Of a stretch of 64,000 nt of DNA, positions 5,285 to 53,524 are shown piece by piece. The stretch comes from Monocercomonoides exilis PA203. Lineage: Eukaryota; Protista; Preaxostyla. The stretch is taken from NCBI GenBank assembly GCA_001643675.2, contig LSRY02000003.1:1054001-1118000 (forward strand). The letters run 5' to 3'. Position numbers and translations under genes: made by a program. Under the pieces are notes generated by a model, which saw only the letters and a list, made by a program, of their open reading frames with translations, did no database searches and had not been told where the DNA came from. Each line of letters begins with the position of its first letter. The stretch's first letter is position 1.

Positions 5285-7774
5285 ATGACGATATATAATA
5301 AAATAAATAAAAATAGAATGTTCTTCTTTTTTTTCCGTTCCATATTTTTCATTTTAACAATTTCGCAAGAGGTGGACGGTGTATCTTTATATACAGTTTA
5401 TGTAAAGCAAACAGGAGACGACAACAAAAATGGAACTTTGATCGGTTATGAAAAGAAATCATTGAAAAGTGCTTATGAGACATTTAACAGACACGTAACA
5501 TGTCAGATAATTGTTGTAAAAGATACTACTGCACTCACTGCAGAGGCTTTAACTTTTAATAAAAGTCAAATAATTACAATTGAAGGATTTGACAGCAAAG
5601 GAGAAGCAAATGAAATTGTTTCAATTAATTGCGACGTGCATCCAGGGAAACATTTATTTTCATGCTACGGAAAAGTCAGCTTTAAATATTTAGCTTTCAA
5701 TTTTCCAATAACATTGAAAGAAGTGGATGACTCAAGTAATTCAGGTTTTTCTTTGATAGATGGTCATAATGTTGAGCTTGAGATAAGAAATTGCCAGTTT
5801 ATTCGACCATTAACAAGTGGAAAAGTCGTTCACATTGGCTTTGTGCATATTTGGGATGGAAGTTTAGTTATGGATTCAGTTGAATGCACAAATGACGATT
5901 ATTCTGTCACATTTGAAGATAACCTTTTTTATGTACGTGCTATTGGAGCAGTTTCGTTGACAAATGTTTCATTGAAAAAAGTGACATGTGAACGCTCAGC
6001 TATTTTTTATATTTACTCATCTGAAAATCAGATAATTAATTTTAAACTGAATGGAAGTTCATTTACAGAATGCATGTCTCATTTTTATGGAGTATTTTAT
6101 GTTTTCTCATCTAGCAATGAAAGCACGTTTTCAGTGGGGAATGAAGGTGTAACGTCTTTCGATTCATGCAGCTGCAGTGGTTCAGACTTCCAATTTGCTG
6201 CAGGTGGAATTTGTTTGTCTGTGGCAAATGTAACATCAGCCTCTCTAATAAAATGGCCAGAAAACGGACAAAATCTCATATTTAAAAACTGTTCAGTTGG
6301 TTTTAATAATTTAAAGAGAAATACTGCATTAGTTTTGCGAATGGACAATCACTCGCTCTTCGAGGATATCGCGAATGCAATGAGAGAAAGTTTTGCTGCA
6401 AATTACACGCGAATGGATAATAGGAGGCATGTTATTGGATATGATTCTGAAAATCACAGAGAATTTGATTTCACAGTTTTATACTTTGATCCTCATCCTC
6501 CAAAGCCAGAAAATATGAAAAGGGCATTCGTGAAGAACAGAGGAAATGGAGATGGAATCACTGTTGAAAAAGCAATTGATAGCATAAGTGATGCATATGA
6601 TTATTTAGACAAGAGTGGGAAATGTTTCATAGATATTATTAAAACAGATGATTTACTCAAAGCTGATCCCGTTTTATTTAAAGTTAGCAATGGAATAACC
6701 ATTGAAGGAGTGAATGGAAACGGAGAGGGAAATACAGAAGTTGTTGTTGATTGTGATGTTAGTGAATCATCAGTTTTATTCTTTTGCCTGAGAATGGTGG
6801 AATTCAAGTATTTGGCATTCCAATTTTCTGCCACAAAAAAGAGCTGGGATTTTTTTATTAGAGCAGATCCAGGGCTAGAACGCTTAGTCCTTAGCCATTG
6901 TCAATTTGTTAGAGTTGGATCACAATCACAAAGAGGAATGAATTCAAATGATGATGGAGACAACTCGATTGGTTACAACCTTATAACCGTGTGTGACGGA
7001 ACAGTGGAAATGAACACAGTGAAATGCACAGATGAAACCTCATTTGTGACATTTTCATCGTCACCATTTTCATTTTCAGGAGCCAGCGAGGTGTTATTGA
7101 ATGGAGTGGAGATCAGCAATTTGAAATTTTCATACGGACCTGCAATTTTTATTTCGGATTCCGAAGAAACAGCTGCGAAAATTTTCATTGAGGGATTGAA
7201 TATCAAAAATTCACATTCGGAGCTTGGATATACAGCTGGATTGTGGATTTCTTTGGTATCAGAAGAATCGACAGTGGCAATTGGAAGAAACGACAAATGT
7301 TCATTCAAGTCGTGTTCAGCACCAGAAGGGAAATCAGGAGCAATATTTATTGACATGCCCAAGGCAACATCGAATCTTCAGCTTCCTTCTGCTAACAATC
7401 TGGAGATAGACAGCTCAAACACAGCTGGCTCAGAATCAACTTCTCTGTTCATTATCGCGCCAGATTTTGACGAGTTCTGCAAACAAGAAGATGCCTTTGA
7501 GTTTGCAAATGATTACGATGAATCAACATCTGGGTGGATAAAGGGAGCAAAAGATGAAGAATCAGAGCCAGAGGATGTGTATGAGAAGTATGTGAAAGTT
7601 AGGCAAGAACAACTCAAAAAGAAAAAAGTTGGCACAATTGTTGCTATTGTTGTGCCGGTAGTGGTTGTTGTTGTGGCTGCGGTTGTTGCTGTTGTGATTG
7701 TAGTTGTTGTAAGAAAAAGGAGAAAGAGAAATGAAGAGAACGAAAACAAGGAGCAAGAAATGAATAGTTTATAG
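5285..7774 (+). CDS. Single-pass type I surface protein with two internal repeats (pectin-lyase/beta-helix-like ectodomain)
   Basis: Intronless 829-aa ORF; hydrophobic signal-like segment after M at 5318 (probable true start). Two ~370-aa homologous units (YVKQTG..SLKSAYE..ITIEG..CDV..FKYLAF / FVKNRG..SISDAYD..ITIEG..CDV..FKYLAF). Val-rich C-terminal TM followed by RKRRKR. Confidence 0.8.
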   Translation: MTIYNKINKNRMFFFFFRSIFFILTISQEVDGVSLYTVYVKQTGDDNKNGTLIGYEKKSLKSAYETFNRHVTCQIIVVKDTTALTAEALTFNKSQIITIEGFDSKGEANEIVSINCDVHPGKHLFSCYGKVSFKYLAFNFPITLKEVDDSSNSGFSLIDGHNVELEIRNCQFIRPLTSGKVVHIGFVHIWDGSLVMDSVECTNDDYSVTFEDNLFYVRAIGAVSLTNVSLKKVTCERSAIFYIYSSENQIINFKLNGSSFTECMSHFYGVFYVFSSSNESTFSVGNEGVTSFDSCSCSGSDFQFAAGGICLSVANVTSASLIKWPENGQNLIFKNCSVGFNNLKRNTALVLRMDNHSLFEDIANAMRESFAANYTRMDNRRHVIGYDSENHREFDFTVLYFDPHPPKPENMKRAFVKNRGNGDGITVEKAIDSISDAYDYLDKSGKCFIDIIKTDDLLKADPVLFKVSNGITIEGVNGNGEGNTEVVVDCDVSESSVLFFCLRMVEFKYLAFQFSATKKSWDFFIRADPGLERLVLSHCQFVRVGSQSQRGMNSNDDGDNSIGYNLITVCDGTVEMNTVKCTDETSFVTFSSSPFSFSGASEVLLNGVEISNLKFSYGPAIFISDSEETAAKIFIEGLNIKNSHSELGYTAGLWISLVSEESTVAIGRNDKCSFKSCSAPEGKSGAIFIDMPKATSNLQLPSANNLEIDSSNTAGSESTSLFIIAPDFDEFCKQEDAFEFANDYDESTSGWIKGAKDEESEPEDVYEKYVKVRQEQLKKKKVGTIVAIVVPVVVVVVAAVVAVVIVVVVRKRRKRNEENENKEQEMNSL

Positions 7775-8375: not shown

Positions 8376-11300
8376 TTAATATCGAATGTTAGACTTTGAA
8401 ATCAGACTTCTTCTTAATGTTGCATCATCTTCCTTTGTAAAATGCTTGTATGTTCTGCTTCTTGCAATTCTTATTCTTCTTACAACAAAGAAAATAACAA
8501 CAACAGAGACTATAAACGTTGGTATAAGAACAGAGCATAGAATTATTGTAACATTTGATTTAGTTGAACGTGGCTTATTTTTTGGATCAATTGGCTTATC
8601 TGCGCTTTTGATTGTAAATTCTTGTGTATGAGTTGTGATATTTTCGTCTGTAAATAAAACACGTACAATGACGCTTTGGTTATTTTGGGAGAGTGAAATG
8701 AAGGACGATGGGACTTCAGATACGACAAGTGTTTCGTTGGGATGCTGTTTAAGTGGCAAGCTTATTCTATCAATGTCAGATTCTTCTTCTCGAATCACTG
8801 CCTCGACAGCAAGGTCACAAGGCATTAGCATCTTCCCAATAAAGCGAATTTCGTAGCCTGAATCTACAGTTTGCACAGCCTCATAACTGGATTGAGAGTT
8901 CATTAGCTGAGAAGAAGAAAAGTGATCAGATGTCGAATGAAGTAAGTCTGCATCGATTGAGGATGATAACAATTTGCTTTCTAAATCTTGATCTGAATGC
9001 AACGCACTGCTTAATTCCCTACTGAACGTCTTTTTCCATGTTCTTGAATTTTTCTTCCAAAAACCTGTTGAATCTTTCCTCTTTGTTTCGATTTGCTTTT
9101 TTTTCAACTCATTTACAATTGGAATAAAAAACCCAGAAGACTTTTTCTTTAACAGCCCATCCATTTCGCAATCATTCGTGTCTATCCACATCGAATCACT
9201 CTCTTCCAACCCATCTCCTTCCGTTAATGAATTGATGGTCAAAGACGCCATTGTGCAATGAATGTTTCTGTGAGCAGAAGGAAAATGAGCCACGTGTGCT
9301 GTCCCACCCACAAATGAGCATGAATTCATGGCCAAATTCCCGGTTATCAAAACAACTGCACCTTTCGAACAGTTCACGAAATGAAGATTGTCTGCCGTGG
9401 AATTGCAGCCGGCAAGCAAGAGCGCTCCGCCTTTCCATCCGCAAATAGCATTCCTGTCGTCAGTCTCAGCAACAGCCTCGCCAACAACAGTCACATTGCG
9501 CAGTGTAGTGTTTGTTCCGAGAACAAATGCGAACTCACTGCCCGCTGTGAAAGTGTCATCTGCTGTGGTCAAATCGCTCAGATGGCCGTGTTGAATAAGT
9601 GTTACGGTTTTGGGGATTGTATGCGACACAATCGCAGGACCATCGTCACGTCTTGTAATGTTTGAAAACTTGAAATCTTCGAGAACCAGAAATGGCTTTG
9701 TATCAGATAGAAGAAGTTGAACAGAGGATGTGATCTCATTTTGATCTGAGTCAAAGACTGATTCAACTGAGAAAGATTGTTTTTCTTTTAAAGCTTTAAC
9801 AAGCTGCTTTCGAATTCTTTTCTCCTTCATCACATCAGCAACAACATTTGAAAATCCTACTCTTCTCCAGAATTCCAGTTGAATTGTTCCTTTGCTCACT
9901 TCATTTTCGCTTCTCCCCGTTTGAACTTGAGCTCCCAAATCAAAAATTCCGTTGGTTTGTTCTTTGATGTATTCATTTTGAAGCTCGCGCCAAATCTGCT
10001 TTGCTTTCATCCATTCACTCGAATCACAAGAATTGGATTGACCTCCATTATGTTTTCCTTCAGACTCAAAAGAAGATGCAGATAAAGATAAAAGACTTTG
10101 AATTTGTTCTTCAGAAGCGTCCTTAAAGAAGTCTTCAATAAATTCATTCTCTTCCTCTTCTTCAATCTTTTCATCTCCTTCAGCAAATGGTGAATGAAAC
10201 ACAGTTTCAATCATTGCGGCTCCTTCCATCTCAACATGCTTGCTTGCTGAAAGCTGAATAAATTCTGCCTGTGGCACGCCTTCCTCAACAACAAACAAAG
10301 GCACTTTGCTCCTCACTGCTTCCACAGTGCATTTAGACACAACAAATGAAGATGCTGTCGAGTACAATGTAAAGAAGCAAACCGCTCCTTTGCCATTTCC
10401 TTCCGTACGAAAAACACATTTCTCCAGCTCAGCCCCTCCCTTTCGCACACCAACGAAAGTACTAAACTTTTCTGGTGACTCTTCCGCTATCTCAAAGATA
10501 ACACTCGAGAATATGATTTTTGCATCAATTCCAGCAAGTCCATGGCTGTAGCACTGAACTACCTCATCGCGTGTGGACGCAACTATTCTTGAGCAATACA
10601 ACACAGCCAATCCTCCTTTTGTATCGGCCGACTTCACATCCATCGTGTCCATGTCAATCTCCTCAATCACATCGGCACGGTCAAGAATGAGCAGAGAGCG
10701 ATGCTTGCCGTCTGCATTGAAATGGATCAGCGCCGTCGCTATGGTCTTGCACGGCTGCGCAGTCAGTCCGCAGGAGAGCTTTTCAGTCGCATCTTTGCTG
10801 GTGCTGGAGGCGCAGCTCGTGTTCCGCATAACGAGATTGATCACGTCATAGATGTCTGTGTCCCTCAGATGCTGCGCCGACTCGTCGCTGTAATAAATAG
10901 CTCTTGATAAGTTGTTGAGAAGAGAGCTATTTTGGTGGAAAATGAATCTGTTAACAGCAAATGACTTGTTGAAGTTCTTGAATTGCAGGTAAAAACCTGG
11001 TGCTACGTCTGCCGCGCAATTTTCGAACTGGACTCGGCAAAACTTGAAGTCGCACACATCGCTTGCAGAGTGGAAAAACAGGCAGCCACCTTTCCCGGTT
11101 TCACCCGGCGGGTCTTCGGCCTTCCGCTTTTTGCAGTAGCAGGACTCGAATCTGACATCGACTATACGCAAATAGTTAGTGTCTGTTGGGCAGTGGAAGA
11201 GAGAGCCTCCAGCTAAAGACACGTTGCACGAGCAGTTTTTGAGGGTGCTTCCGCGAAGAGAGAAAGGAAAAGGCTTGTTGGAGGCAGATGAGAGAATGCA

Positions 11301-13865
11301 GGATCCTTCTTGCTGACGCCAAACATGCACAAACTCTGAATCAGCGATGGAAATTGTTGGGACAGATGTCTATCAAGTGTGTATATGAAAAAGAAAAAAT
11401 GGAATATAATTCGTAAAATAAATAAAATAAAACACAATAAAAAACATTTTCAAAAAAAGTAATATTGAATTAAAATCAAAAATTTTTCTTTCAAATACCA
11501 ACGATTTTTCAAAAAGTTTTAAAATAACAATATACGAAAAATGCATTGAAAAGAAAACTTGGATCTTATAACAAACTGTTTCAGGAATCCAGAATAGAGA
11601 GCAGTTCATCAAAAACCAAATATCAATCTTGAACGATTCCAAAGCCAACGATCCGCTTTCCACGACAAACATTGGTGATGTGAAATACTTTGGCTCAGTC
11701 AAGTTCAAACCAGAGTCAACCTTCACGCTAATTTTTGATATACTCGTTTTACTATCCTTCTTTTGCCTCAGCAAAGACAGTGACTTTTGTGTGTCTGATT
11801 CACTCAAAAACACAAAGTCCACGTTTTTCAGCGTCAATTCCCCATTTTCCACATAAAACACTGAGATATTCGTATTCAGCACATTTCCCGGCTCAAAGGA
11901 CGTTGCAATGGAAAAAGATGAATCAATTCTAACTTTCTGCCCGTTGACAACACTAAGCTCTGTTTCCCCTGTTATTTTCTCTTCGATCACAATCCGGCAC
12001 AAAACAGACTTTATTGCACGCTCCAAGCAGTATTTCACAGTCTTGCACTGGCTGTTTTTCTCTCCTCCATATCTTCCACAGAGGAGATTGTCATTGCCTT
12101 CCGTGGGGTTCACTCTTCTCTCTGTCACCCCCTTTTCAAGCCAGTTGTCGTAAAAGCTGCTGTTCGACGCAGAAAACCAGCAGAAGACGCGGCTGTTCTC
12201 GTTGCTTGAAATGCAGTTGCTGAACGGATTGAACGATTGAATGTTGACATCTGAGCTGAACACGAAATGCACATCAAAACCGCTCTGTTTTGTTCTGTCT
12301 GTTGCAACATTGTTGTTGAAAAAGGTGAAAGAAATTGCTATTGGAGTCTCATCATTCTGCCAAAGTGGACTTATTCTTGATGAAATTGATGAAATAGTTT
12401 GTAGATTACTATCAATGGAAGATGAATAAGATGGAGAAGAACATACTCCCGAAGAAGAAGATAATTTGTTTGAAAGATTTATGTTCTTTTTCAAGTTCAT
12501 TCTCATTGCTCCTCCAGTGACCGCTATGCAATCACTAAACTGACTGTTGCTTATCACAACATTCAACTCTAACTCATCGAGCAAAATTCCTCCTCCGCTT
12601 CCATTAACAGCTTTGCAATTCTTGAATATTAGTTGATCCAAAACACATTTGTTTGCTTCAGTTGGTGCTAAATTTTCAACATTCCCAAAATAATCGTTTG
12701 CATTTTTTGCAGATCCTCCTTTGCTTTTGGACAAATATATTCCTCCCCCGCTTCCTGAAGAGCCTGACGTCAAAAATGAGCACTTTGTAATAGTAATCTC
12801 CTTTGTTGAGCCTTCAACATACAAACAACCTCCGCCACAATCTTTTCCCTTTGTGGAGCAATTTTCGAATACGCATCCATCCAAGTTTGTGATCCCGCAT
12901 CCAATCACACAAACACCTCCTCCTTCACGTAAAGCATAGCAATTCTCCACGCGGCATCCACTCATCTCAACTCTATCTTTTTCTCCTCCAACCACACACA
13001 ATCCACCTCCCTTTTGCTCGTTGATCGAAGCTCCTTCAGCTATACACCCCATAAAGCAATCTCCGACAAACGTTGCTGATTCCTTCATTGATTTTCGAAC
13101 ATACCACACTGTTTTTTTCGCACATCTTTGATAAGTGCTATTGTGAGATAAAAACGATCCAAATCCAATCATTCCATGAGTAAAAACACCAGACAAAGCA
13201 TTGTCAACGCAATAAAATTTGCTCGATTCAATATAAGTATTTTCGAATGAATCAAAAGCTTCAAAATTTTTCAGGTCATGTTGATTGCTTTTGTCAATAG
13301 CAGTTGCTTTCCAAGTAATGTTTGAAAAATGACTGTCGCTGATCAATTCTGAATTGCGAGAACCACAAATCAAAAATGGATTTTCAGGAAGTAGAACTAA
13401 ATTGGATAATTGTAATAAAGAATAGCAAGCTGATGAATCATTTCCTTTGATGAAATTTATCGATAAAGGATGGTTCATTTCAGATAAAGATTTTTCTGAG
13501 GAAAATGTGAAGTTGAAAATATTAAAGACACAATTTGATGATGAAAATAGTGTGGGTTCATGTTTTCCGGATATTTGCATGGAACAAGAATGCATTGTAA
13601 GTGCAGAATTTAAAGCAAAATTGTTTCGAGCCTCATCGTTAATTTGGCAAAGAACAACTCGATTAAGCTCAAGAGATGAATTTACAATATTCAGTGTTGA
13701 CTTGATAGTTGATTTTACAACACTTTCATAAGTTTGATGTTGCGTAAATGAATAAAGTGATTGATAGTTGTAAAATGGAACGTTATCCAAAGAAATTTGG
13801 AATTTATCCGAACAAAAAGCATCAATTATAAATAATGTTACCGCAAGATATAAGCAAGCGGTCAT
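8376..13865 (-). CDS. Large (~1760 aa) single-pass surface protein with GG-rich right-handed beta-helix-like repeats; 2 exons (13865-11577, 11369-8376)
   Basis: ORFs 11373..13976 and 8376..11330 join in phase 0 through a GT..AG intron at 11370-11576 (WIPET|TSVPTISIAD). Signal peptide MTACLYLAVTLFIIDAFCS; repeated GGGL/GGGV/GGGI motifs with F.NC; CG...PC.TI motifs; C-terminal TM IILCSVLIPTFIVSVVVIFFVV-RRIR. Confidence 0.8.
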
Positions 13866-14003
13866 ATATGTCTTTCTATTCGAAAAATGAAAAAATAAAA
13901 AAAAATTTAAGATCATATGGCACATAAATATGTGAAAAAAAGAAAGAAAAAAATAATGATATGGGCTAGATTCCACTGTATCAATTACAAAATTGCGGTC
14001 TAA

Positions 14004-17000
14004 ATGTCGGAATTGGACACAAAGTCGATTGGTTCGACATCGTCGTCATCATCGACTGATGTAGCCGTAACATTTGCAAGATTTGACGCAATGGATAAAT
14101 CGTTTGACTTATTTTTATACAAAAATATTTTCCGAGAAAAGCAGAAAAATAATTTAGTGTTTTCTCTTTTTTTACACCATTTGCAAATGTTTGTTTTCAA
14201 TTGTTATATATTTGAGAATTACTTCATTGGTTGCTTTTTTAGAGAAGGATTCAGCTGCCAAATTTTGCGGTTATCATCGTTTGTGTGCTAATGGCATTTC
14301 AATCAACTTTTGTTCCATTGAAAAGAAACGTCACTCACGTTGGCATTGTTGAATTTAACAAGGCTGTTGGGTGTGCGATTTTCATCATTCAAAATTCTCA
14401 AAAAGAAATATCATTTATTTTATAATCCTCTACAGCCTTTACTTTGATCCTTCATTTTATACGCCGTCATTTAGCAGCCTTGCAGTTTTTGTTATTCTTT
14501 TTGTTGCATTTATTTTATTCATTCTCGTTGGATCTGTTTTTGCATGTATTATGATCCAACACGAGAAAAAATTTCCGTTCTTCGTTCAAAGGACGACTCA
14601 AATTTTTACTCTTATTTTGACCACGTTTGGGATGATTCCTATTATTAGCATATTGTCCCTTCCATTGATATGTTTTTATAAATCTCTACACCCTGACGAC
14701 AATTTTTGCGAGAATGATCCTCTGTTACTTCCGTTAATGATTATCTGTATTATTGCTTTGCCGCTTATAATTGTCTTTATTTGGCTTTACCGCGTGTTTG
14801 TGTTCAACCCTAACGGAATCCAAGGGAACATGCTCGCTTCACGTCACGGCAGATACAACGCTCTGATAAGCATACTGCTCATTGCAGACTCGATGGCCGC
14901 GGTTCTGCTTGCGGACGAAGAGAGCGTCATCGTCAGCGTCGTGCACACTTTTCTGCTTGCTATCGCTATCGCCATCTGTCTCGTCGGTCAGCCGTTCCAC
15001 CGGCTCAAAGGGAACGTGCTGGTCTGCAGCTGCCTCGGCGTGAGCTTTGGCGGTGGGATTGCCTCGTTTTTCCTGGAGCTCATCGACAGCTCAGCTGCAG
15101 CCATTGGCAACATCGGCGCCGGTGTGATTTTCTGGATCGTGCTTGTGCTTCTGTGTGCGGGCTTTGGGGTTGCGTGTGGCGTGCTGATGCGAAAGAGGAT
15201 GAGACACATCTGGATTGTGGAGCCTTATCAGTGCAAAGCGAAGACAGACAGAAACGAAGAAGTCGTCGAAGTCGGGTTTGAACTGAAACTGGGGAAAAAC
15301 ATGGTGCAGTTGTATTCTTCTGTGCCGGAAAGAAGACATGCTGAAAAAACAGCTGTTGGAAGGCCAGCCAGCTCTGCTGTGAGCAAGTTAGGACCACTCA
15401 ACTCTTCTTCCAATTCATCATCTTCTTCCTCTTCTTCCTCTTCCAGTTCTTCTTCTTCCTCCTCCTCATCCTCTTCCTCATCCACCTCCTCCTCAGTATA
15501 CAGCACATCCAACGGGTCAGGCCTGTGCTCGCCTTCTCCTCTCACCTCGCCAACAACTGGAATGCCCACCTTCACGTCTCCTCTGGCTGTGAATGTCGAT
15601 CTGCACCAGATGTCTCCGGAATGCTCCTCGCCTGTGACATCGCCTTCGCCCGCCCTATCGCTTTCGCCGCTTATCATGTCTTCCACCTCTTCGACTTCGC
15701 TGCTTCCTCTTTGCTCTTCCTCTTCCTCTTCTTCTTCCTCCTCATCTTCTTCTTCTTCCTTGTCTTCCATTTACTCCTCCACCACGTCGCTGACTTCATC
15801 CACAGACAGACTTCTCCCAAAGCAGAATCCGAATGCAACAAACGGGTCTGACAAAGTCCTCTCGCCAATCGCCAACGAAGACACGCCTTTCAGCGAAATT
15901 GCCTCTCCCTCAGCGCCTCAGGCAAGCTTCTCTTCCTCTTCTTTGGCTTCGCTGTCATCAACTCTGGCTTCTTCAAACACATCTTCTTCTTCGTCTTCGT
16001 CTTCGTCTTCATCATCATCTTCTTCTGCTCCAGCCAAACCAATTAATCGCTCAAATTCCTCTTCCTTCTCCCGTTCGATGCAGCTACAAGTAGTTCCGTT
16101 TGCCTCGTCCTCCCTCACATCGCCCACAAAACCTTCCACGCCACTCACAAGCCCAACTCCCTTAACTTCAGAAAATCCTCTTTCTCCGACTTACACAAAC
16201 ACCTCGTTCCATCTCATCTCCACACACAACCCGTCCCCCTTGGTCAATTCGTATGGCGACAAAGGAATGAAAAAGTGGGGGCAGCAGTCTTCTTCCTCTT
16301 CCTCCTCTTCCTCATCATCATCGTCGTCGTCTTCTTCTTCTTCTTCTTTGTCTGCCTCATCTGCTTCGTTAGAACCAGCCGGCGTCTCCTCCATTCTTTC
16401 TGCGCAGAACGCCAAAAAAGTGATCAAACCTCTCCACAAACCAGAAGACATCGAAGTCAGACTTCGTTTTCTGTACGACCCAGCCATTATGAAGCTCGAC
16501 TGCTACAGCCAAATTGTCGCCTTTGCCGAAGAGATCTACTCGTCTGCCCTGAAAAAACAGCGTTTTGAGAACTCCGCCGACCTGCTTGTTTCCTACATCC
16601 TCTTTCTGGACGTGTTCCGCGAGTGCCACAAGCAGCGCATCAGCCGGCGCGGCGTCTCCGTCCAAGTTGCGCGTCTTCTGCGGCGTGCGTGCGAAAGCTG
16701 CCCCGGCTGGACAAACCGCTGGATGGTGTATCAGAAGATGAAGATGATGGAGAGCGTGCTGGGCGAGCTGACAATCGAGGGAGAAGACATGGCAGCTTCG
16801 GGCAGTTTCAATGGGAGTCTTGTTGGAGCAGCAGGGGCAGCGATGGGGGCGCCAGGCATTATGCACAGAGAGAGCTTCAGCACGGCGTATGGAAGGAACA
16901 CGCCAGCAGCGATGATGCTGCACAGCAGCTCGATGAAGTCGCTGGGGTTTGACGAGGATGCGTATGCGAAGGATGCGCTGGATGTGGAAGGCGGGAGAGG

Positions 17001-20000
17001 GAACAGCTCGTACATGATGCATGTGCAGCTGCAGCAGGCGAGCAAAGACGTGGAGCTGGCGAAGGCGCACCTGCTGCGTGTGTGGATGCTGCTGTCGCGG
17101 CGTGTGGTGGATGTGCAGATGGTGATGAAGCACGCAGTGGAGAGCATCAACTACCGCGAAGAGGCTCAGCACATCTTCGTCGGCCTGATGGAGAGCCACC
17201 CGGAGAACACGAATGTCATGCGGCAGTATGCGCTGCTGCTGCGGGATGTGTTTATGGACGAGGAGGCAGCTGCCAGCCTATTGCACGAGGCAGACTCGAT
17301 TGAGGAAGAATTCACGGCGATGGAGAACTCGGCGATGGACACGATATCGCTGATGTCGATCCACTCGTACAACAACAACAACGAGCTGTCGCCAGGGCAG
17401 GGGATGACTGACAGAGAAGACGTGAAGGAGGACTCGGGGACAGATAACTGGGAGCTGCGGAAGCTGAACAACAAGCTGGGTGCAGTTGAGTACGAAGGAG
17501 CATATTCAGATGCGAGCTCGAAGCAGAAGATGGAGTCGGACAACTGGAACGAGCGGATGCTGGAGCAGCAGCTGGCAGACATTACAGAGCGGACGGAGAG
17601 GACAGAAAGAACTGACAGAGAGGGTGGAGCACATAGCTTGGTAACAAAAGGGTATCGTGACAGACAAGGAGAGCTGAAGAAGCGGATGGCGATGAAGAAG
17701 AAGGACAAGAAGAAGGAGAGAAAGATGAAGTCGCGAAGGAACCTGTCGGAGACGGTGATGGTGACGCAGAACAAGACGAAGAAAATTGTGGTAGCGCTGT
17801 CGCTGCTGTATCTGACGCTGATTCTGGTGCTGATCATCTTTATGGTCTCTTATTTCTGGGCTAATTCGCAGTTCTCCAAAGCAACGGTCTCTTCTGATAA
17901 TGTGCGAAAGGGCGTGCGGATCTCGGCTGAGCTGAATGCCGTGTTCCATCTGATGGAGCTGTACATGTTTGTGTTCTCAAATCGCACAGATATCGGTCTT
18001 TCAATGCAGGAGATGAAGGAAATGCTCGACGTGATTAAAGCTGATGCAGTCATTGCCAGCCAAGAGTCCTATTCGCGTTTCTCAGGCTTCTACAAGAACT
18101 CCTACCAGGAGTCGTCGTGGAAGTCCACAGACAACGTGTGGCTTGAGCCGACCCTGGATGCGCAGTATCAGGTTGTGGCGATGCGGGAAAAGAAGCTGTC
18201 GATGCTGTCGCTCATCAGCTGGGCGCAGGACATTCTGAACGAGGTGTTTGTGGACATGGACATCATGAGCGTGTCGGAGAGCCACATGCAGCAGGTGGCC
18301 TGCACATTTGCAATGAACATCCCATACATCCTATCGGAGAGGCTGAAGAAGCTGAGCTCGGATGCGTTTGTGGATACTTCTGACCTGATGTCTGAGGCAA
18401 CTGTGGTGTTTGCTATCTTTCTCGCAGCGTGTTTTGTGCTGAACATCTGTCTGACATTCCTTCCGTTGTACATTCTGATTAAGCATTTGATAAGGCAGTG
18501 GAAGCAAAAGCTGAGGAACCTGTGCAACTGCACGCCTGAAGAAGCGCAGAAGATTGTGAGCAAACTCGAAGGGAAGCAGAGCCACGAATCGAACAGAGAG
18601 CAGGATATTGCAAAGAAGGAGGCGAAGGAAGCGCAGCAACAGCAACTGCAGCAGCAACAACAGAGGAACACATCGTCGACAAGCACAAGCACAGCCAGCG
18701 GGAGGCCAAACGTGGTGGACGACAACGAGAACGAGTGCTGCAACAACTCTGACTACAACATGAGCGACGTGGACAGAGACTCGAACGTGAAGATGCCCTA
18801 TCGCCTGTCTGTTCCTGACTCCATCGCTCTCGATATGCAAGGCGTCTCCACGCCTTCCTCACACAGCAGTATTTCACCACTTATGGCCCACACCATGTCC
18901 CCACCGTATTCGATGACGCCCATGCCGAAGTCTCCTCTTTCTTCCATTTCATTCCAGACAACACCTCAAAGCGTGTCCCCGCAGGGCAGTTTTTCGATGC
19001 CGCTGGAAGCATCGGCGTCTGAAAACAAAAGCATAAAGACGAAGACGCTCTCAACATATTCTCTTCTGCAGGAGGCAAACTCTGATGCCACTTCTGGGCA
19101 ACCTGCTGCGAGCAAGCGGCAGGCCACAGACAGACAGACAACCGAGCGGCGCGAGCGGCTGTCATCTTCGCTGTCGATTCAGTCATTCCCCAACCTCGTC
19201 ACGTTCCAGTACAACAGTGAGGCTAATCTTCTTCCGTCTCAGCATCATCCATTACCCCCTGGAGAGCGAGAGCCAAAGAAGCACCACAAGAAGCTGTCAG
19301 CGCGGTCGAACTCGGCCAGCGACGGCTCCTCTTTCACGTCACGCGGCACGTCCACAAACACCGAAGACTCGTCGCATTCGCTCAGCGGCAACTCAGAGGA
19401 GTCCAAAATGAAGCGGCTGCAGCGGCGGAAGGAACGGAAGGAGCGGAGGAAGAACAAAGAGAGGGAGAAGCGCATCCAGATGGAGCAGCAGTACATCGCC
19501 GAGAAGGAGTCGGAGGAGAAGCGGAAGTTGGCGCAGAGGATGGCCGACTTCGATGCGCGTGTGTCGCATGTGAAGGGCATCATTCCGAAGAGCATCTGGT
19601 TTCGAGTGATTGTCGGCACAGTGCTGCTGATTGTGTCGTCGTCTGTGTTTTTTATTGTGGGAATATACTTCTTCTCGCAGTTTTCAAATATCACTGCGAA
19701 CATCGTGGTGAATGTGTACAGGCGTGTTATTTTGGTGCAGATTTCTGGATGCACAACGATGATGTTTGCCAATGCAACATATCCGCTTGCTGCTCCAGAT
19801 CTGGAGAGAGTGTTTGATGGATTCACTTCTCCTGCCATTCTGTCGAATAAATTCTGCGTGACGAGGCAAAGCCTGCGCAATGTGATTGGCGTGCTGGCTC
19901 AGCACTTTGCAGAACTGACGACGATATTCATATCAGGGTCAGAGAGTATGCCTCCCACTGGAGACGAGGCATTCAACAAGATTATTATCTCCAGGACACA

Positions 20001-21003
20001 AGGAAGCGACGATGTGCTGACAATGCTCGCATCAAGTGTGTGCGAGTGCATCACAGAGAAGGGAATTAATGTTAGTTGTCCAGCGGAAAAGCTTCCAGGC
20101 ATAACAGGCACGTATTTTGGAGTTCAAGAGCTTTGCACCAGATTTGTAGAAGCAGCGACTGCTGTTAGAAATTTGGACGAAAATCAATACAGCTATACGA
20201 ACGTGAACTATCAGCACTTGATCAAGTCAGCAACGCAAGATTTGCAGTATGGAATAGATCTTATTGAGCTTCACTACACCGATGTTCTTGATGCATTTGT
20301 TGCCAATTCGTCGAGTGTGATGCTTGTTCTGTTTGTGACCATCGCGGTGTTTATGGTGACGATTGCCTGCACCTTCTTTTTGTCGCTTCCGCCGTCGATC
20401 AACAGAGTGGCGGAGCTGACGGAGTGCCTAAGTGACATGTCAGCATCGTCGTCGCTGGTGGCGCAGTGGAAGGAGGAGATGAGCATCGGCGTGGAGTCGT
20501 GGGACTCCATCCACCAGAACATTGTGGAGGCTGCAGGCTCGCTGATCAGCGACATGAAGGACGACAAGCCGCTGACGCTGCTGTCGCAGGAGATGGACTC
20601 GCTGCTGGCAGCTTTCAGCGCGCACTGCGCAGCGGAGGAGGTGATGATGGAGCGCTGCAGCTACCCGACAAAGGCGAGGAGCAAGCACGACACGGTGCAC
20701 GTGTGGATCTTCAGGAAGATGATTGATGTGTGCCAGCAGTTCCAGAAGGGAAAGCCTTCGATGACAGAGATTGATTTGATCTACCAGGCAATTGTGAAGG
20801 ACGAGGTTGATTCGATGGATCGGGAGCTATCTTCGTTTATTCAGGCTTCGTGTAGCGATATGGCGGTGGATGACTTGCTTCATTCGTTGGAGAATGTTGT
20901 TCCACGGTGTGTGGTTGAGTTTTACAAGGGCCCCAACGCCACAATGGTGGAAAAAATGAACTTTGAGCAGGTTAAGGAGCGTATTGATAGCAAGACAGAG
21001 TAG
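14004..21003 (+). CDS. TmcB/TmcC-like polytopic membrane protein (~2300 aa) with C-terminal hemerythrin-like domain
   Basis: N-terminal multi-TM block, Ser-rich insert, TPR-like segment (ADLLVSYILFLDVF..A..F..LMESHPENTNVMRQYALLLRDVFMDEEAA, typical of TmcB/C-family proteins), two further TM pairs, then a hemerythrin motif at 20467-20840. Two short 5' introns (~14189-14242, ~14371-14435). The exon 1/2 join needs either the second AG or a 1-bp T-run correction. Confidence 0.8.
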
Positions 21004-22873
21004 CCATGCTATCTTCTTTTTTATTAATGAATTACAATGATTATAAATATTTAGTTTCTTTATGAATGTGTGAATTGTGCACTTTGTTTTTGTTGAGTTT
21101 TTATGTTATGGAATTATGTATGTATAAACTGACTTCTTTATAGCAAGCACTGAGCTAAAATATGAAGCAATTCACAAATGTTACTTTGCATTTCCACTAA
21201 TTTACAAATCCTAAAATTTCAATTTTGAATTCTTTTCGTATGATTTCTAAAAAACTTATTCGAACATATTTTTAATTGATTATTTGGTTCTTTGTTTCTT
21301 TTTTCTTTTCTGGATATAAATTTTATGGATAGTTTTCATGTTGTTGTGCCTAGTGGAGTAGAAAGATTTTTTCATTCATTCTTTAATTTTTCTTTGCTTT
21401 TCATAATTTTTTTTCTTTTTTCTGTTTTATTTCCTTTTCTTTCTTTCTTTTGTTTAATTTTATTTTTTAATTTTATTTTATGTTTCATCCGAATTAATTG
21501 GTTGCTTTATTTTGTATGAAAAAATCTGTCTGCTAAGCTCTCAAAAGACAGAAATTTCTTATAAAGAAACTGTTTTTCAGTCCATCATTGACGATGCTTT
21601 ACATTTTTATGTATTTGAATATGTATTTCTTTGTTTAATTAACTTTTCTATTCTTTTTTCTTTTCATTTTTTAAAGTCAGCATGTATACTTGAATGCCCC
21701 TTGATTTGTTTATCGTTTATTGTCACCGACTTCTCTTCCTGTTTACCAATGTTTTACCCTATTTTGATTGTGCGTAATATGATTAATGTTTCAAAACACA
21801 ACAATTCTTGTTTTTAAAAGCCAAGGTTGTTTCTTTGTAACTTTTAATTTGCCCACCAACCGTCTTTCAATTTATAAAAAATTTGCATTTCAAAGTTCTT
21901 TTTTAAATTTAAAGAAAAAATAATTATGTGAAAATCTTTATAATTTTTTTCATTGAACACAAATTGATTGAAGCAATTCGGTGGTTTTAATTATTATTTT
22001 TATTATTAAGTTTTATAGTTCATCTTTCTAACGAAAAATTAAATAAAACAAGAAAAGTATAGAAAAAAAAGAAAGAAAGAAAGAAAAGAAAAGAAAAAAC
22101 CCATTCTTTATTTGTTGGCGTTAATTTTTGCCAAATTTTGGAATCGAGATTTACACCTAAAGATTTTTTTAAGTAGAAAAATTTATTCGATATTGCAAAT
22201 GTTTATTCAAGATCGAAAATACATTAATCCCAATTTTTATTTTTTATTCCATATTTCTAATTCAAATCAGTAATTATTCTCTTGTTGAATGATAAAACAA
22301 ACTTGATAATTTCGAATATAATAATAATTTGTTGAGATTTTTTTTGTGTTTGGATGTGTGTAATAGCAAATATATTTCATAGTTTCTTCGAATATGAAAA
22401 TCTGTACTTGTGCAAAGGATGAAAAAGAAAGCCATTTATTGTATGGGGGAAAACAAGAGACTTCAAGCTTTTTCATTGAAAAATTTTGCACTTTTCATTG
22501 ACTTTTTAAAATCAATAAACATAATAAAAATGGGTCCATTTTTTGACATTCATGAAACGTTGGAAAACTTAACGTTTTGATTTCAACGATACCTGTTTAC
22601 GGATATGAAAATCAAATTTATTTTGTAATCTGAGAAAGATATACAAAGTTTGAATGAAGCAATAATTTTGTGCTTTGTGCATATAAAGCTTGAAAGTCCG
22701 TATTTTCCCCCGTATTATCGGAAATATTAATTTAAATAAATATATTCAAAGAAAAAGTCAGTATTTTTTACCTTATTGGGTTTTGATTTTCAAACGTATA
22801 TTTTTTCTACGAAAATTTTCTGTTTGAAAATTTCATTTGAATGCAAATAAATAAACACTGAAAAGGTATAATA

Positions 22874-40479: not shown

Positions 40480-43400
40480 ATGAGAATTGCATATTTATTG
40501 CTGGCTATACTACTATTTTTAAAGTGCGATAGCAAAGGGTATGCAGAGTTTAGTTGCAATTATGTTGGAGTATGCCCAAATAACAACGATTGTGTTATCA
40601 AAGAAGGTTCCGAAGGGCTGGGAAGCGATATTTTTCTACGGGCACGAAAAAAGTGTGTCAAGAGTGATATTCCTATTTTTTGAGTTAAATTATCACATTT
40701 CATTTCATAATTGAAAATTATAGAAAACTTGCAGCCGAGGAGCCTTGGACAGACAGTTGTGTGCCTTATTGCGTCAGTAGCTCCAACAAAATATATACAG
40801 CTATAATTGAAGCGAATACAAGCCTGGAATTGCGAAGCCTGAATTTGGAGCCGATTTTTGAGAAACGCATTTGCGAAGTTGTTGATTCATCGTCTTTGGC
40901 TGTTTGGTCGTGCCTGGTCGTCTCTTCTCGCACAGGGTTTGGCATTTCATCTCCGATCCTTTCGGCAGCAGGAGGCAACCGGGTTATGCTTTGCAACGCC
41001 AGTGTGCTTCCATCATTGGCGAATGGGCTTGTGAGTTCGCTTGTCGAGGCGTACCAACCTCCATTTCATTCTGTGTCCGAAACAACCATTTCTGTTGTGT
41101 TTTGTGCGTTTTCTTCGTTGAGTGTTGCTTCTTGTCCGTTTGTGGGGTGTGCTGGCAGCAGCTTCATTTTCTTGGAACATTCTTTGTTCGCAAACATTTC
41201 ATCGCCTCATCCATTTCAACCAACCCAATCAGCTCCCCTGCAAGCAGGCTCCACATTTATTGGCTGCTGTTCGTTTTCATCTGTTTGGGATGTGTATGAT
41301 AGGGGGATTGTTCCATCTCTCAACAACCCTTCGTCTTCGTTATCTGCCTCAAACACCTCATTTGTCAGATGCTATCGCTCTCGGAATGTTGCAATCAGCG
41401 GGAGTGAAGGAAATCCTTCGAAAGCAGGGAGACAGAATCAGACAGACAATGGGGCAAATTCGTTCACATGGTGTGAGTGGAACGGATCGAGAACAATTGG
41501 AAACATGAATGATTATACTGATGGAACATCAAATGGAGGGGCAATTTACATATGTAACAAGGTATCTGGAACACTTTCGGTGAAATTTTGTTTATTCAAT
41601 GATTGCCATGCGTATTGTGCTGGGGGAGGAATCATGTGTCGTACAATCAGTTCAATTAAGATTGAGAACAACTCATTCAATGCTTGCACAACACAAAATT
41701 ATTATGGAGGAGGGATGTATGCTTTTTCAATTTCGATATGCGTCAGAATCAGTGGGTGTGAATTTCAGAGATGCACAGCAAATGGTTTTGGAGGAGGACT
41801 TTATCTTGATGCAATTTGTGTTTCTGGATCTGGATGTGTTGGAACAGAAAATGGGAAAGGGGAGAGCGCTTGCGTGTTTGAGTGTTTCTTCACTTCATGC
41901 TCCATAACAAATTCGAATGGCGGAGGGATGTGTTGTCACACTGTTCCTGCGGTATTCAAAATGAGGAGTGTCCAATTTATTTCATGCTTGGCAGTATCAA
42001 ATGGTGGAGGATTGGATTTTCATACAGTTCAGTCAACACCTCCAAGCAACAGCATTTATTGCTATTTCCTCTTCTTCCACGATTGCAGTTGCAAGGCTTC
42101 CACTCCATATGGCCACGATGTGTATTTTCAAGACAATAAAAATCTCTTCTCATCTCACAATCCTTTTTATGAATCATATACAACGAATAGCGATGAAAAG
42201 CGAGTATGCTACATTTATTATTCAAGCAGTTGGGCGTATCAGCACACAGAAAAGAAATGGTGGCTGAAGGAAGGAATGAAGGATCGGTATGTTGGGGTGA
42301 GTGGAAGTAACGCAAACAATTTGTGTGGGATGAGCGTGGCAACGCCTTGCCTCACGGTAGGGTATGCGGTGGAGTCGAGCATGAAGCAGCTGAGCTCGAC
42401 AATCACAGTGCTGGGTGGGAGGCATATGAGCGAAGGGGCGACGATCAATGTTGGGGAAAAGAAGATTTCAGTTGTTGGGAAAGGGAAGACAGTGAGTGTG
42501 ATTGGGATAAGTGCGCTTTCGACCTCTTCGACAACGCTGTTCAGCATATCTACTGGTCAACTGGAGGTGGGGCATGTGGGGATCGATCACAACTCGATGA
42601 GAAGCCCATCACCGAGTGTGTTTGTGGTGTCTGTGGGGAGTGGGACTCTTTTGCTGGAGGATGTGGCGATCAGTTCTTCCACATCAGGAGGGAGTGGAAT
42701 CTCGTCATCTGTGTTTGAAGTGGCACTGAGGCAGTTAAAGACGATTGATGTGGAGATAAAAAATATGAAAATGAGTCAATCACTATTTGCCGAACCATCA
42801 TCAGCAGGATCGTCATCAGGAGAGAGTGTTTTGGCGAATGCGACAATTCTGAATGTGAATCTGACTGAAGGAGATGGGGTGGTTGTGGCAAAGAATGTGA
42901 ATGGAGAGGAGACATTTGTGGTGAGCAACACAACAATTGAGGATTGTGTATGTGAGAATGGGAATGGTGGAGGAATACATATTTGTTTGCAAGGAAATGG
43001 GAATATGGTTATGAATGGAACAAGTTTGATTGATGGATGTGTTGCAATGGGTATTGAAGGAAATGGAGGGAAAGGAGGAGGAATATATGTGGGGATGGAG
43101 AATGAGGGATGTGGATTGACAATTGGAGAGAATGTTGAGTTTTCGAAAGTGAATGGGAATGTGGCATTATATGGGAAGGATGTGTTTGTTGATTGTGGGA
43201 GCGGAGTGTTTTTGGAGTCAAAAGTGAATACAAGCTCATTTGCCTTTTTTGACGCAAGAACCATTCCATCAGATGTGTTGAAATTGAGTGGGAGTGAAAA
43301 TGGGGATGAAAGTGAAGTGATTCCACTGTTTGTGTTTTTGTGCTCAATGGGAACGAAGGTGCTTGTTGATGGGAGTGGAAGAAATGGGATGGATCACAAC

Positions 43401-46400
43401 CATTGTGGATATGAAGGTTTTGGCTGTTTGACAGTTGATTATTGCGCGAACTCAAGAATGAGTGAAAGTTCAAAAGAAATTGAGATTGTCTCTTCTTCTT
43501 CAATTGCCAAGGAAATAACAGGACCGTCATTTGGTGTGTTAATTTCAGGCAGAATAGTGTCATCCGATGGAGAGAGGATGGGAGTGAATGTGAGTGATGG
43601 AGGATCAGCCACACAAGAATGGCTTGCTGGATGTTCAAGTTCACTGACAATAAGGAGACTTTCATTTGTTGTGAAAGGTCAGTTGAATTCAAGGAGAAGT
43701 GCATTCATCCATTCAACATCAACACTCAAAATTACAAACTGTTCAATCTCAATTGAGAGTGGGGCATTGACTGATGGAAAGATAGGATATTATGTGATAA
43801 ACATTGAGGGAGGAGAACTGATTATTGATGGATTTGTGATGGAAAGTGGAGTGACAATGAATGGGAAATCGCCAATATCAATGACAAGTGGAGTGGAAAT
43901 GGAGATTTTGAACATCAGAATGAGTGGAGTGGAGGTGGAAGGTGGGAATGGAGGAGGGGGATGTTTGAATGTTGGGATGAATGAAGGAGGGAATGTGAAA
44001 ATTGAAGAAAGCAATTTTTCATCAAGATGCTCAGGTGGAAGTGGAATGAAAGGAGGAGGGATGATGATATCAATTGGAAGTGAAGGAAGTTTGGAGATGA
44101 ATAATGTGAAATTATCAGAATGTGAAGCGCCAACAGAGGATAGAGAGGATGGAGGAAGAGGAATGGGAGGAGGGATGTTTGTTGAACTTCCCAATCAAAT
44201 TGGATCATTTGTGCTTGAAGAAATGAAATTTGAAGAATGCGAAGCTTGGAAAGGGAAGAATGTGTTTGTCTCTGGATGGGATCTGAGTGAGATTGTGAAT
44301 AAAGGGAACTTCAAATGGGAGATGAGTTCAGAGGAGTTGAGATTGTTGGATGAGCTGTGTGGATGGGAGAGAAAGACGACAGGAGAGGAGGGATATGTGA
44401 TTCCACTGGTTGTATATTTGTGGGACAATTGGAGCAGGAATGGATTTGTTTCGAAAGAGAAAGGAGGAGACTTCAGTGGGTGTGGATATTCAGAAGCACC
44501 ATGTTCATCGATTGACCACTTGATATCACTGAGATATGAACCACTTGGAGAAGGGGAATCACACATCAACGTTGTGGGATCAGGTTCTGTTCAAAAAGCA
44601 ATATCATTTTTGTTATCATCATCTTCAAACACTACAGTTGTGTCAATTGAGGGAGAGAAAGAAGGAACAGATCTGAAAGTGAGTGAGGGGGGAAGAAATG
44701 AAGGCGAAGGAGGAGGAGGAGGAGGAATGATAACATTGAATGTTTGTCTTTCATTCACCAATATTTCATTTTCTTTGCCAAATGAATTGGGAGGATATTC
44801 ATCACTCATTCACTCAACTTCATCCTCAGCAGCATCACTTTCAATCATGAGATGCTCATTTGTTTGTGAGGATGCAACAAAGGAAACAAAATATTGTTTA
44901 ATGAAAGCAGATGGAGGGAGTGTGACGATTGAGGATGTCACTCTTTCTGAGTTCAGTCTGACAAAAGGGTTTGTTGTATTCACAACAGATGTGAAAAGTG
45001 TTGATGTGATGAATATGACGATATCGAACACAACAATATCAGGAAACAGTTTGATTTCGCTGAGTCAGCCATCCACTTCAAACATGTTGATCAAGAAAGC
45101 AAAAGAAAACACAGAGCAAAGGGTGAGAGTGAACGACTCCTCGTTCACAAACATCACATGTTCAGAGAGCAGAGCATGTGTGATGAGTGTGGGATCATTT
45201 TCATCTGGGATGGAATGTGAGATCGAAGGGTGCGTGCTGACGAAGTGCATGAGTGAGAGAAGCTTGGAAGGAGGAGGGATGAAGATGCTGATGAAGAGAG
45301 GAGAGTCGGAGGTGAAAGTGAGTGGGTGTTCGTTTGGGATGTGTGTGTGTTCAACAGGGAATGGAAGTGGAGGAGGGATGATGATTGATGCACTTGACCC
45401 GAATGTGGAATGCTCCAACAAGGAAATACCACCACTTGGGCTGAGATTGGAGAACATCCGATTCATGATGAATGATGCGTTTGTGGGGAAGGATGTGTTC
45501 ATCCGATGTGAATCGATTGCCTCGCAGATCAATGAAAGACTGTTTTTGCTGGACTTCAGTCAGGAATCTTTGAAGTTGAACAACTCGATGTGTGGGAGTG
45601 ACGGAGAAGGGACTATTGATGTTGATCTGATTCCGCTGATCACATTCTATTATTCTTCACAGGTGTTTGTCTCAGTGAAAGGGAGCGACAGCGCGCAATG
45701 TGGAAGACAGGATGCGCCATGTGAGAGCATCAGCAATGGAGTGCAACACATTCAACGAAGTGTTGTGAATATGATTCTTATTGATGGAGAAGGGAAGATA
45801 GGAGGAGAATGTGTGATTGGGGATGTGAGGATGGAGCCTGTGAAGAAAGCAAAGGGGAAGATCCATTTTGATGGGAAGATAGAAAAAACATCAGAGGAGG
45901 ACAGCATCATGAAGTTTGTGAATGAGAGTGCAGTGGAAAGATGCTCATTTGAGTTTGGAAGTGAGTTTGAGGCAAATCACAAGTTCATTTTGAAAGTGAA
46001 AAATGACTCAATGGAGATGCGAAGTTGCGAGTTTATTTCGTCTTCTGTTGAGCTGAAGTTGGGCAACACGATTGTGAGTGTGGAAAGTGGAGAATTGAAA
46101 ATGTGGGAAATGGAATTCAGCAGTTTGCATCTGAGAGCACCATTGATTGTGTTGTGTGAAGAGTCGAAAGTGTTGATGGGAGAAACAAACATTTGGAATG
46201 TGATGTGTGAAGGAGATGCAGCTATTGTTGTTGTTGTTGTTGGAGGGAAAGCAGAGTTTGAGATGAAAGAAATGAGGTTTGAGAATATTTCTCTGTTGAC
46301 GGATGGATGTGTGATGGTGATTGATGGAGCAGAAGAAGAAATACGAGTGACTAATTGCTCGTTTGTGAAATGGGTGAATATGAATGGGAAAGGAAGCATG

Positions 46401-48194
46401 ATGGAGATGAGAGAATGCAGGGAAGTGCAGCTTGAGGCATGCTTGTTTGATGGAGAAAGAGGTGAAGGCGGAGAAAAGAAAATCAATGGGAAAACGAATG
46501 AGGAAGAAGATATGTGCAGATGGTCTGGATCTCTTGTGGATATTGTGAAGAGTTCAGTGATGATGAAAGACACAACAATATCAAATTCACCAGAAGGTGG
46601 AATAACAATGAGTGGAGGGGAAATGACTGTTAATGATGGAAGATTTGAAAACAACAATCCCTCAATTGAAGGATATCCATCATTGAGAAGAAATATCATC
46701 TGTTCAGATGCAGGAACATTGAATGTGATGAGTTTGAAAGGAGGAGATGGAGTTTTGCCGAACACATCTCTTTGGATGTTGAATGAAGGGTGCAGTTTTG
46801 AAGGGATTGTTTCAGAAAGGGATTCATCATTCTTCATTCCTGTGTTGGAAAGTGTTGAAGCAAAAGAAATAACAGATAGAATGAAGCTGATATTCAAAGG
46901 AATGCTTCTTGTTCCATGCAATCTGTCATTCTCAGTTGTGAAGAGGAAGGGAGAGGAGAAAGAGATTGAAAAACACAACTTTGATACAAATCGATTTTTG
47001 TCAGAAAGAGAAGCAGAAGGAAGTGTGGCAAAAGATCTAATCAGTGGTTGTGGAAATGAAATAGAAGTGAGCGTGTGCGTTCTGTTTGGGAATGCAGAAT
47101 CTTCTTCTTCGACAAATTCATTCATTCTGAAGAACAGAAGTGAGGTTGAACCAAAAGGAGATGAAATAATCTCAAAAGGAGAAAACAAAATTGAATGGGG
47201 CGTTATTGCCTTTATTTGTTGCGTTGCCGTTCTTTTAATTTTTGTTGCTTTGTTTGTTGTTGTTGTTGTGCTTCTGAGAAAGAAACTGAGAGAATCAGAA
47301 AAGAATGTTGAAAAAAAGAGATTAGAAAACGAGCAAATAATGGGGAAGATTGAGAGGAGAAGAAGGGAAAACAACGGAGGGAGCTTTGAGATGAGCGAAA
47401 TGCGATCAACATTGCTGGAAGGGATGACAAGCCAAATTCCACTTCTCATTGACAACGATGAAGATCTTCCAGAGCCTCCTTCAATGGCTGATGGAGAGTT
47501 GAGCGAAAATGATCTTCCAGATTTGGAACCACCATTGCCATTTTCAGAGAATGCTTCTGTTCCTAGAATATCTCAATCACATTCATTCAATGTTATATCA
47601 GCCAAAAAGCCATTTCGAGAAAAGGAGAAAAAGAATATCAAAACATTACACTCAGCGATTCATTCTGTGCAAGGCAATTTCACATTGGGAACAAGAGCGA
47701 TGGATGTTGTTGATGGGAAGGAAGTGGTTATGGCAGTGGCAGAGCTGTTTGAGCATTTGATTTCTGTTGGAGACGAAAAGGTGGAAATGATGGCGAGGCA
47801 GCTGTGCCCGTATTCGATCTTTGTTGAGGAAGGAAATAATGAAATATTTGTTTTGACAGAGGAATTAGAGGATAAAAAGGAAAAGGAAGAAATGAAGCGA
47901 TGGAAGGCACCAGAAGTGGGAAACGAAGATGAGGGAATTGAACAGGCAGTTGCTTTCACACTTGGACTGATTCTCCATGAAATGACAACCGGGGAAGTGC
48001 CGCTGAGTGAATGCAATGCAGAAGAGGCGCAAGAGATGATGAGGGATGGAGTACGACCGCTGACAGAAGGAATCGAAGAGGAAGAAATGGTTGAGCTGAT
48101 GGAAAAGATGTGGGCAGACGAGCCAGATAGCAGACCCACATTGGGTGAAGTGATTCAATTGTTGACAGAAATAGTGGAGAATGATACAGAGTGA
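40480..48194 (+). CDS. Giant receptor-like protein: signal peptide, Cys/Gly-rich beta-helix-like ectodomain, one TM, degenerate TKL-like kinase C-lobe; 2 exons
   Basis: Exon 1 (MRIAYLLLAILLFLKC..) joins ORF 40761..48194 via an intron at ~40653-40723. Many GGG[IM] and CG....PC motifs; TM at ~47195-47277; C-terminal RWKAPE..FTLGLILHEMTTGEVP..GVRP..MWADEPDSRPTLGEV (kinase subdomains VIII-XI) without HRD/DFG. Confidence 0.85.

Positions 48195-50906: not shown

Positions 50907-50941
<35 letters not shown>

Positions 50942-52415: not shown

Positions 52416-52456
<41 letters not shown>

Positions 52457-53492: not shown

Positions 53493-53524
<32 letters not shown>

Follow-up and report, generated by a model that had tools for sequence, protein, structure and literature searches.

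The locus examined here raises the question of what a bacterial-type hemerythrin domain does at the end of a large eukaryotic membrane protein, and what it means that one of its iron-binding histidines has given way to a glutamate. The window, by which we mean the whole analysed stretch of 64,000 nucleotides from Monocercomonoides exilis PA203 (contig LSRY02000003.1, positions 1,054,001 to 1,118,000), contains a hemerythrin motif within a long plus-strand open reading frame ending at 21003. RNA contigs from four runs of one study skip three GT-AG introns upstream (14102-14157, 14189-14242 and 14370-14434), and an exon-by-exon check found the exons open and the frame kept from the ATG at 14004; this start is supported because all three introns keep the frame. 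From 16000 to 21200, 99-100% of the sampled words are present in the RNA contigs of the library. The gene is expressed in an RNA library, the evidence consisting of contigs from that single study. Its features are collected in Table 1.

Table 1. Features of the TmcB-hemerythrin gene, in positions of the window.
Feature	Position	Strand	Details and basis
TmcB-hemerythrin gene	14004..21003	+	4 exons, 2274 aa, 12 predicted TM
Exons	14004-14101, 14158-14188, 14243-14369, 14435-21003	+	RNA contig joints
N-terminal 8-TM block, first TM in exon 3	14264..15177	+	hydropathy; kept in paralogs
Large cytosolic region: Ser-rich low-complexity stretches and conserved helical TmcB region	15178..17784	+	
TPR_TmcB (PF25474)	17026..17310	+	39.2 bits against a cut-off of 27
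TM9, first extracellular domain (about 190 aa), TM10	17785..18459	+	hydropathy, positive-inside bias
Cytosolic charged low-complexity loop	18460..19608	+	
TM11, second extracellular domain (about 215 aa), TM12	19609..20373	+	AF2 model, conserved Cys, sequons
Bacteriohemerythrin domain	20467..20850	+	profiles, AF2 model, alignment
Glu codon at the His101 position (DcrH His118, Fe1 ligand)	20803..20805	+	alignment; Fe1 assignment from PMC3947700
C-terminal cap, three short helices	20851..21000	+	AF2 model, family alignment

The ATG of the gene lies close to the likely start of a divergent, head-to-head open reading frame (11373-13976, minus strand), whose GG-rich repeats are typical of beta-helix surface proteins. 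Neither this frame nor two other large ones (5285-7774, plus; 8376-11330, minus) gave a Pfam match over the cut-off. Elsewhere in the window, a Tc1/mariner-like element (1940-2911, minus) has DDE_3 and HTH matches below the cut-off. A 2477-aa frame (40761-48194, plus) ends in a partial Tyr/Ser-Thr kinase match and probably belongs to a large M. exilis receptor-kinase family, and a 4135-aa frame (48812-61219, minus) combines weak WD40 propeller matches with long, strongly skewed low-complexity stretches.

The original prediction had placed a hemerythrin domain on the tail of a TmcB-type polytopic receptor, and the profile searches support this. The NF033749 bacteriohemerythrin profile matches with an E-value of 9.5e-15 over 123 of 129 positions (54.9 bits, cut-off 84), TIGR02481 matches over nearly its whole length (E 1.2e-12; 48 bits, cut-off 51.75) and PF01814 matches at E 0.002. 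All three hemerythrin matches stay under their cut-offs, whereas TPR_TmcB exceeds its own; 18 paralogs pass the TIGR02481 cut-off by themselves. A single-sequence search of the PDB with the protein returned no hemerythrin, but a profile built from 16 paralogs did, matching DcrH-Hr (4e-14) and McHr (1e-13) and placing the glutamate of the window gene in the column of DcrH His118. The AF2 model of the tail (pLDDT 90.8) is a four-helix bundle, as had been anticipated, with an N-terminal Trp loop and three short cap helices. Its best structural match is DcrH-Hr (2AVK; Z 15.7, rmsd 2.0 over 131 residues), and it also matches McHr (Z 14.9) and an invertebrate hemerythrin (Z 12.8). Judged by sequence and modelled fold, the tail is a true bacteriohemerythrin homolog of the DcrH/McHr type.

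The ligand set was correctly read at the outset, with all named residues present. The codons start at 20467 (the N-terminal Trp), 20512 (His25), 20623 (His54), 20635 (Glu58), 20686 (His73), 20698 (His77) and 20818 (Asp106), so that six of the seven ligands are canonical; with glutamate for the fifth histidine, the tail departs from the five-His pattern H-HxxxE-HxxxH-HxxxxD. It likewise departs from the conserved hydrophobic O2 pocket (Phe55Cys, Trp97Ile, Leu98Val and Val for Ile102); among the matches, Phe and Trp are the residues in 91 of 98 non-TmcB hemerythrin domains. The cysteine at position 55 (20626-20628), beside His54, is common to the three closest M. exilis genes with an acid at 101 and may be redox-active or a metal ligand. 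An assembly error is an unlikely source of the glutamate: the C2 paralog encodes it with a different codon despite saturated synonymous sites, and the RNA contigs hold 99-100% of the sampled words of this part of the gene.

An even number of transmembrane segments and the positive-inside bias of the sequence argue that the hemerythrin tail lies on the cytosolic side. The spacing of TM9, the first outer domain and TM10 is identical in all full-length paralogs. The second extracellular domain has a conserved Cys pair and N-glycan sequons, and its AF2 model (pLDDT 93.7) is again a four-helix bundle, although its structural matches (PilJ Z 13.1, PcaY 11.6, McpN 11.2, NarQ 10.4) lie near the chance background of helical bundles. 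They support, but do not prove, a PilJ/McpN/PcaY-like ligand-binding fold of the kind used by chemoreceptors and histidine-kinase sensors. Compared by BLAST, the two outer domains show no mutual similarity. Within the family, one branch conserves the three-helix cap behind the hemerythrin domain; bacterial hemerythrins lack it.

TmcB/TmcC proteins usually carry one or more PAS domains after the TPR region. In the window protein, Pfam profiles detected neither PAS (none at E 1) nor cyclase, as had been predicted, and the region after TPR_TmcB, where a PAS domain would be expected, is poorly conserved among paralogs. Genome-wide, PF13426 (PAS) had no match, and the four cyclase loci (PF00211) are far from, and unlinked to, any PF25474 match. 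A fusion to either domain is ruled out by the protein and genome-wide searches. Dictyostelium TmcB/TmcC share the TPR_TmcB domain behind an N-terminal TM block, which has eight segments in the window protein, but the latter has no PAS domain and ends in hemerythrin. By topology, the closest likeness is to the TMACs of Trichomonas (PMC2914791), which likewise have 6-8 TMs at the N-terminus, then a conserved cytosolic domain, two extracellular domains framed by four TMs and a C-terminal cytosolic domain, along with a large paralog expansion including pseudogenes, as in the family described here. The TMACs end in a class III cyclase where the window protein ends in hemerythrin, and thus bear out the expectation that similar receptors of other protists carry a cyclase. 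The only other link to Parabasalia that we found is a PAS-bearing Atlas cluster with a TM score of 0.44 over the outer-domain module.

The gene had been treated as a singleton; it is in fact one of about 59 loci. The genome searched comprises 82,301,135 bases in 101 contigs, as published for the M. exilis ONT assembly (PMC8767320), and profile searches found 69 TPR_TmcB matches and 59 hemerythrin loci in it. Coordinates place 57 of the 59 downstream of, and on the same strand as, a TPR_TmcB match, whereas published work has mentioned M. exilis 'hemerythrin' only as an oxidative-stress protectant (PMC6759080). The remaining two are broken copies of a single gene, C47:119k, one with an internal deletion and one truncated. 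In the former (L032, C47:470.9-473.5k), the first 381 aa are joined to the last 487 aa and the TPR region is deleted; the latter (L033/L010, C47:218.9-219.4k) comprises a 3' portion that contains an in-frame TAG. A further paralog (L031, C80:949.3-958k) falls into two overlapping long frames near L031:4090-4403, which may reflect a frameshift, an intron or an ONT error. About 12 of the 69 TPR_TmcB matches have no hemerythrin match. The 69 matches contradict a 2021 survey that sampled M. exilis and reported tmcB homologs to be absent from the sampled metamonads other than Carpediemonas (PMC8516963).

Relatives with the full module occur in Blattamonas nauphoetae, Streblomastix strix, Paratrimastix pyriformis and metagenomes, so the same architecture extends across Preaxostyla, and all named matches with both modules belong to this group (30 looked up among the best 150 matches). 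Some carry database labels such as 'putative hemerythrin' or 'TmcB/TmcC TPR repeats domain-containing protein'. Our literature search, which covered subscription papers poorly, found no paper that combines TmcB with hemerythrin, and the receptor family is apparently undescribed. In one Paratrimastix protein (P0058, KAJ4460679.1), an outer domain and an intact-site hemerythrin (750-866) are followed by a protein kinase domain (960-1229), which may be an output domain or come from a fused gene model.

Across 71 aligned family members, Glu58, His73 and His77 never vary, and conservation of His101 and Asp106 is at least 90%. The histidines of the O2-binding iron are treated differently: His54 is kept in 22 of 96 members, and about four in five lack His25 or His54 and yet keep the Fe1 ligand set. 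Most members thus retain His101 and have lost the O2-iron histidines, and the window gene shows the reverse pattern, altering the Fe1 ligand that the intact- and half-site M. exilis paralogs conserve and keeping the Fe2 ligands that most of them lose.

An acid at position 101 is not confined to the window gene. Glutamate also occurs in C2:778k and in Paratrimastix PAPYR_2376 (L042:15200-15844), and aspartate in C91:576k, MONOS_10741 and the JGI metagenome protein P0018; the count leaves out 39 M. exilis paralogs, some of them covered by public proteins, and more copies may exist. P0094 was discarded from this set because its apparent acid reflects a one-residue misalignment. All six well-aligned acid-101 proteins keep His25 and His54, compared with 12 of 66 members with His101, although five of the six, four M. 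exilis genes and P0018, are related to each other and make up a small subfamily. Trp97 is lost in all six and Phe55 in five, in three of them to Cys. With the trait columns removed, the window gene, C2, C91 and P0018 form a clade with moderate support (SH-aLRT 89, bootstrap 92). The place of MONOS_10741 in the tree is unresolved, and its joining this clade was not rejected (p-AU 0.36). The AU test rejected the joining of PAPYR_2376, for which an independent, convergent origin of Glu101 is only a lead, resting on a predicted gene model; this protein has Cys97, Ile55, Pro102 and His103, and the neighbouring gene is also of the TmcB type.

No M. exilis gene is more than 30% identical to P0018, which places the variant in a second organism. 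The window gene and its C2 paralog agree at 7/7 site residues, with saturation at synonymous sites and a pN of 0.24 over the hemerythrin domain. Among the non-TmcB hemerythrin domains matched, a list biased by the profile, none of 98 has an acid at 101. Where well-aligned members replace His101, they do so only by another potential ligand, an argument for a metal still being present at Fe1. On these sequence comparisons, the acid persists over long branches and is a real, conserved ligand variant.

Our preferred reading, which we hold tentatively and with a probability of roughly 0.45, is that the tail forms a low-potential, fast-oxidising di-iron redox switch in a plasma-membrane receptor. 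It would bind two irons through four histidines and three carboxylates, with Glu replacing His101 on Fe1, and Fe2 would keep His25, His54 and an open site. The anionic ligand gained by Fe1 would favour the ferric form, and solvent would enter past the smaller pocket residues Cys55, Ile97 and Val98. Because of both changes, rapid oxidation of the site by O2, peroxide or NO would take the place of a stable oxy adduct. This chemical prediction draws on general metal-ligand principles and on pocket mutants. A point against it is that Glu and Asp alternate at position 101, the shorter side chain of Asp perhaps not extending as far as Fe1; the AF2 model of the tail carries no metals. In DcrH, His118 is a ligand of Fe1 (PMC3947700), and O2 binds Fe2, the iron with two histidines (PMC9388753), so that the swap would lie on the iron to which O2 does not bind. 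Rapid autoxidation is already known from characterised bacterial hemerythrin sensors with canonical sites, some of which do not form an oxy adduct at all (PMC9388753).

DcrH-Hr is itself a redox/O2 sensor on a receptor tail, and the profile and fold match to it counts for the redox-switch reading. With DcrH-Hr, Bhr-DGC, Bhr-HD-GYP and McHr the window protein has in common the fold, the ligand spacing, the N-terminal Trp loop, the position as a cytosolic receptor tail and the anaerobic host. In contrast to DcrH-type sensors, it has Glu at the His118 equivalent, smaller residues at 55, 97 and 98, an extra three-helix cap, and a eukaryotic TmcB scaffold of 12 TMs that lacks an MCP, GGDEF or HD-GYP output. 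As the receptor contains no enzyme domain, its output would have to go through a separate protein: the redox state could pass via TM12 or the cap helices to partners at the TmcB/TPR region, and might be combined with the input from a ligand that the outer four-helix domains bind.

The strongest competitor to this reading, unlikely in our view but a real contender, takes the tail for a metal-stabilised docking or output module. An Fe1-side metal (Fe, Zn or Mn) would be structural or allosteric throughout the family, Glu or Asp at 101 a tolerated ligand, and the input an extracellular ligand. The family pattern speaks for it, with about four in five members keeping the Fe1 set and lacking His25 or His54; since most members have lost the O2-iron ligands, the common job of the family may indeed not involve O2. 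The two extracellular domains are sensor-like, and hemerythrin occupies the place of the Trichomonas output cyclase. What this explanation accommodates poorly is the retention of His25 and His54 in every acid-101 protein over long branches, when they are so often lost elsewhere; this points to a second metal site under selection.

It had also been proposed that the swap recalls the iron-sensing hemerythrin-like domain of FBXL5, and the tail could then act as an iron-occupancy sensor whose site loads only at high cytosolic Fe(II) and whose apo form unfolds or frees a partner. M. exilis depends on Fe-S enzymes, and a cytosolic position would suit such a role. The count of four histidines and three carboxylates, equal to that described for the human iron sensor (PMC6993866), is the part of the likeness that stood, and the only feature common to FBXL5 and the window tail. 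Sequence and fold do not follow: the 16-paralog profile search gave no match to FBXL5 at E 0.1, and the tail superposes on it poorly, with a TM score (by target) of 0.30-0.45, compared with 0.75-0.83 for bacterial hemerythrins. Membership in the FBXL5 type was rejected on these grounds, the tail being closer to O2-binding hemerythrins. The swap itself differs as well; FBXL5 keeps the helix-4 His and has its extra Glu directly after the helix-2 His. An iron-occupancy sensor of FBXL5-like action is accordingly quite improbable.

Very improbable, too, is a catalytic di-iron site, at which Asp or Glu101 would only hydrogen-bond to a water on Fe1, leaving both irons open to turn over H2O2, O2 or NO at the membrane. 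Such a site would explain the interchange of Glu and Asp and the opened pocket, and wild-type DcrH-Hr disproportionates H2O2, with one change beside His118 leading to peroxidase-like chemistry (PMC3947700); but a receptor of 2274 aa with two outer domains is ill suited to carry a detoxifying enzyme, and no reductase partner was seen. That Glu101 is mere drift in a domain no longer binding metal is highly improbable, for although the tail scores below the TIGR02481 and Pfam cut-offs, Trp97 and Phe55 are changed too and the family includes broken copies, the six other ligands are intact, five divergent proteins, coming from two organisms or more, retain the acid, and purifying selection relative to the C2 paralog is strong.

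On the boldest reading, the roughly 60 Preaxostyla receptors might fall into three tail classes tuned by first-shell ligand swaps, namely an intact di-iron site, an Fe1-only half-site and the acid-101 site. The last would be a natural site of four histidines and three carboxylates, either low-potential or doubly open, set for another threshold or for an oxidant other than O2 (peroxide or NO), and the three together would provide graded oxygen or redox sensing without mitochondria or HIF. We regard this scheme as distinctly unlikely as it stands. The tail, at 190 aa, is small and easy to express, and the intact-site paralogs, among them C50:68966-69493, are natural controls for the exchange of a histidine for a carboxylate on Fe1. 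The TmcB-hemerythrin family gives candidate receptors for the sensing of oxygen or oxidants in amitochondriate, anaerobic oxymonads.
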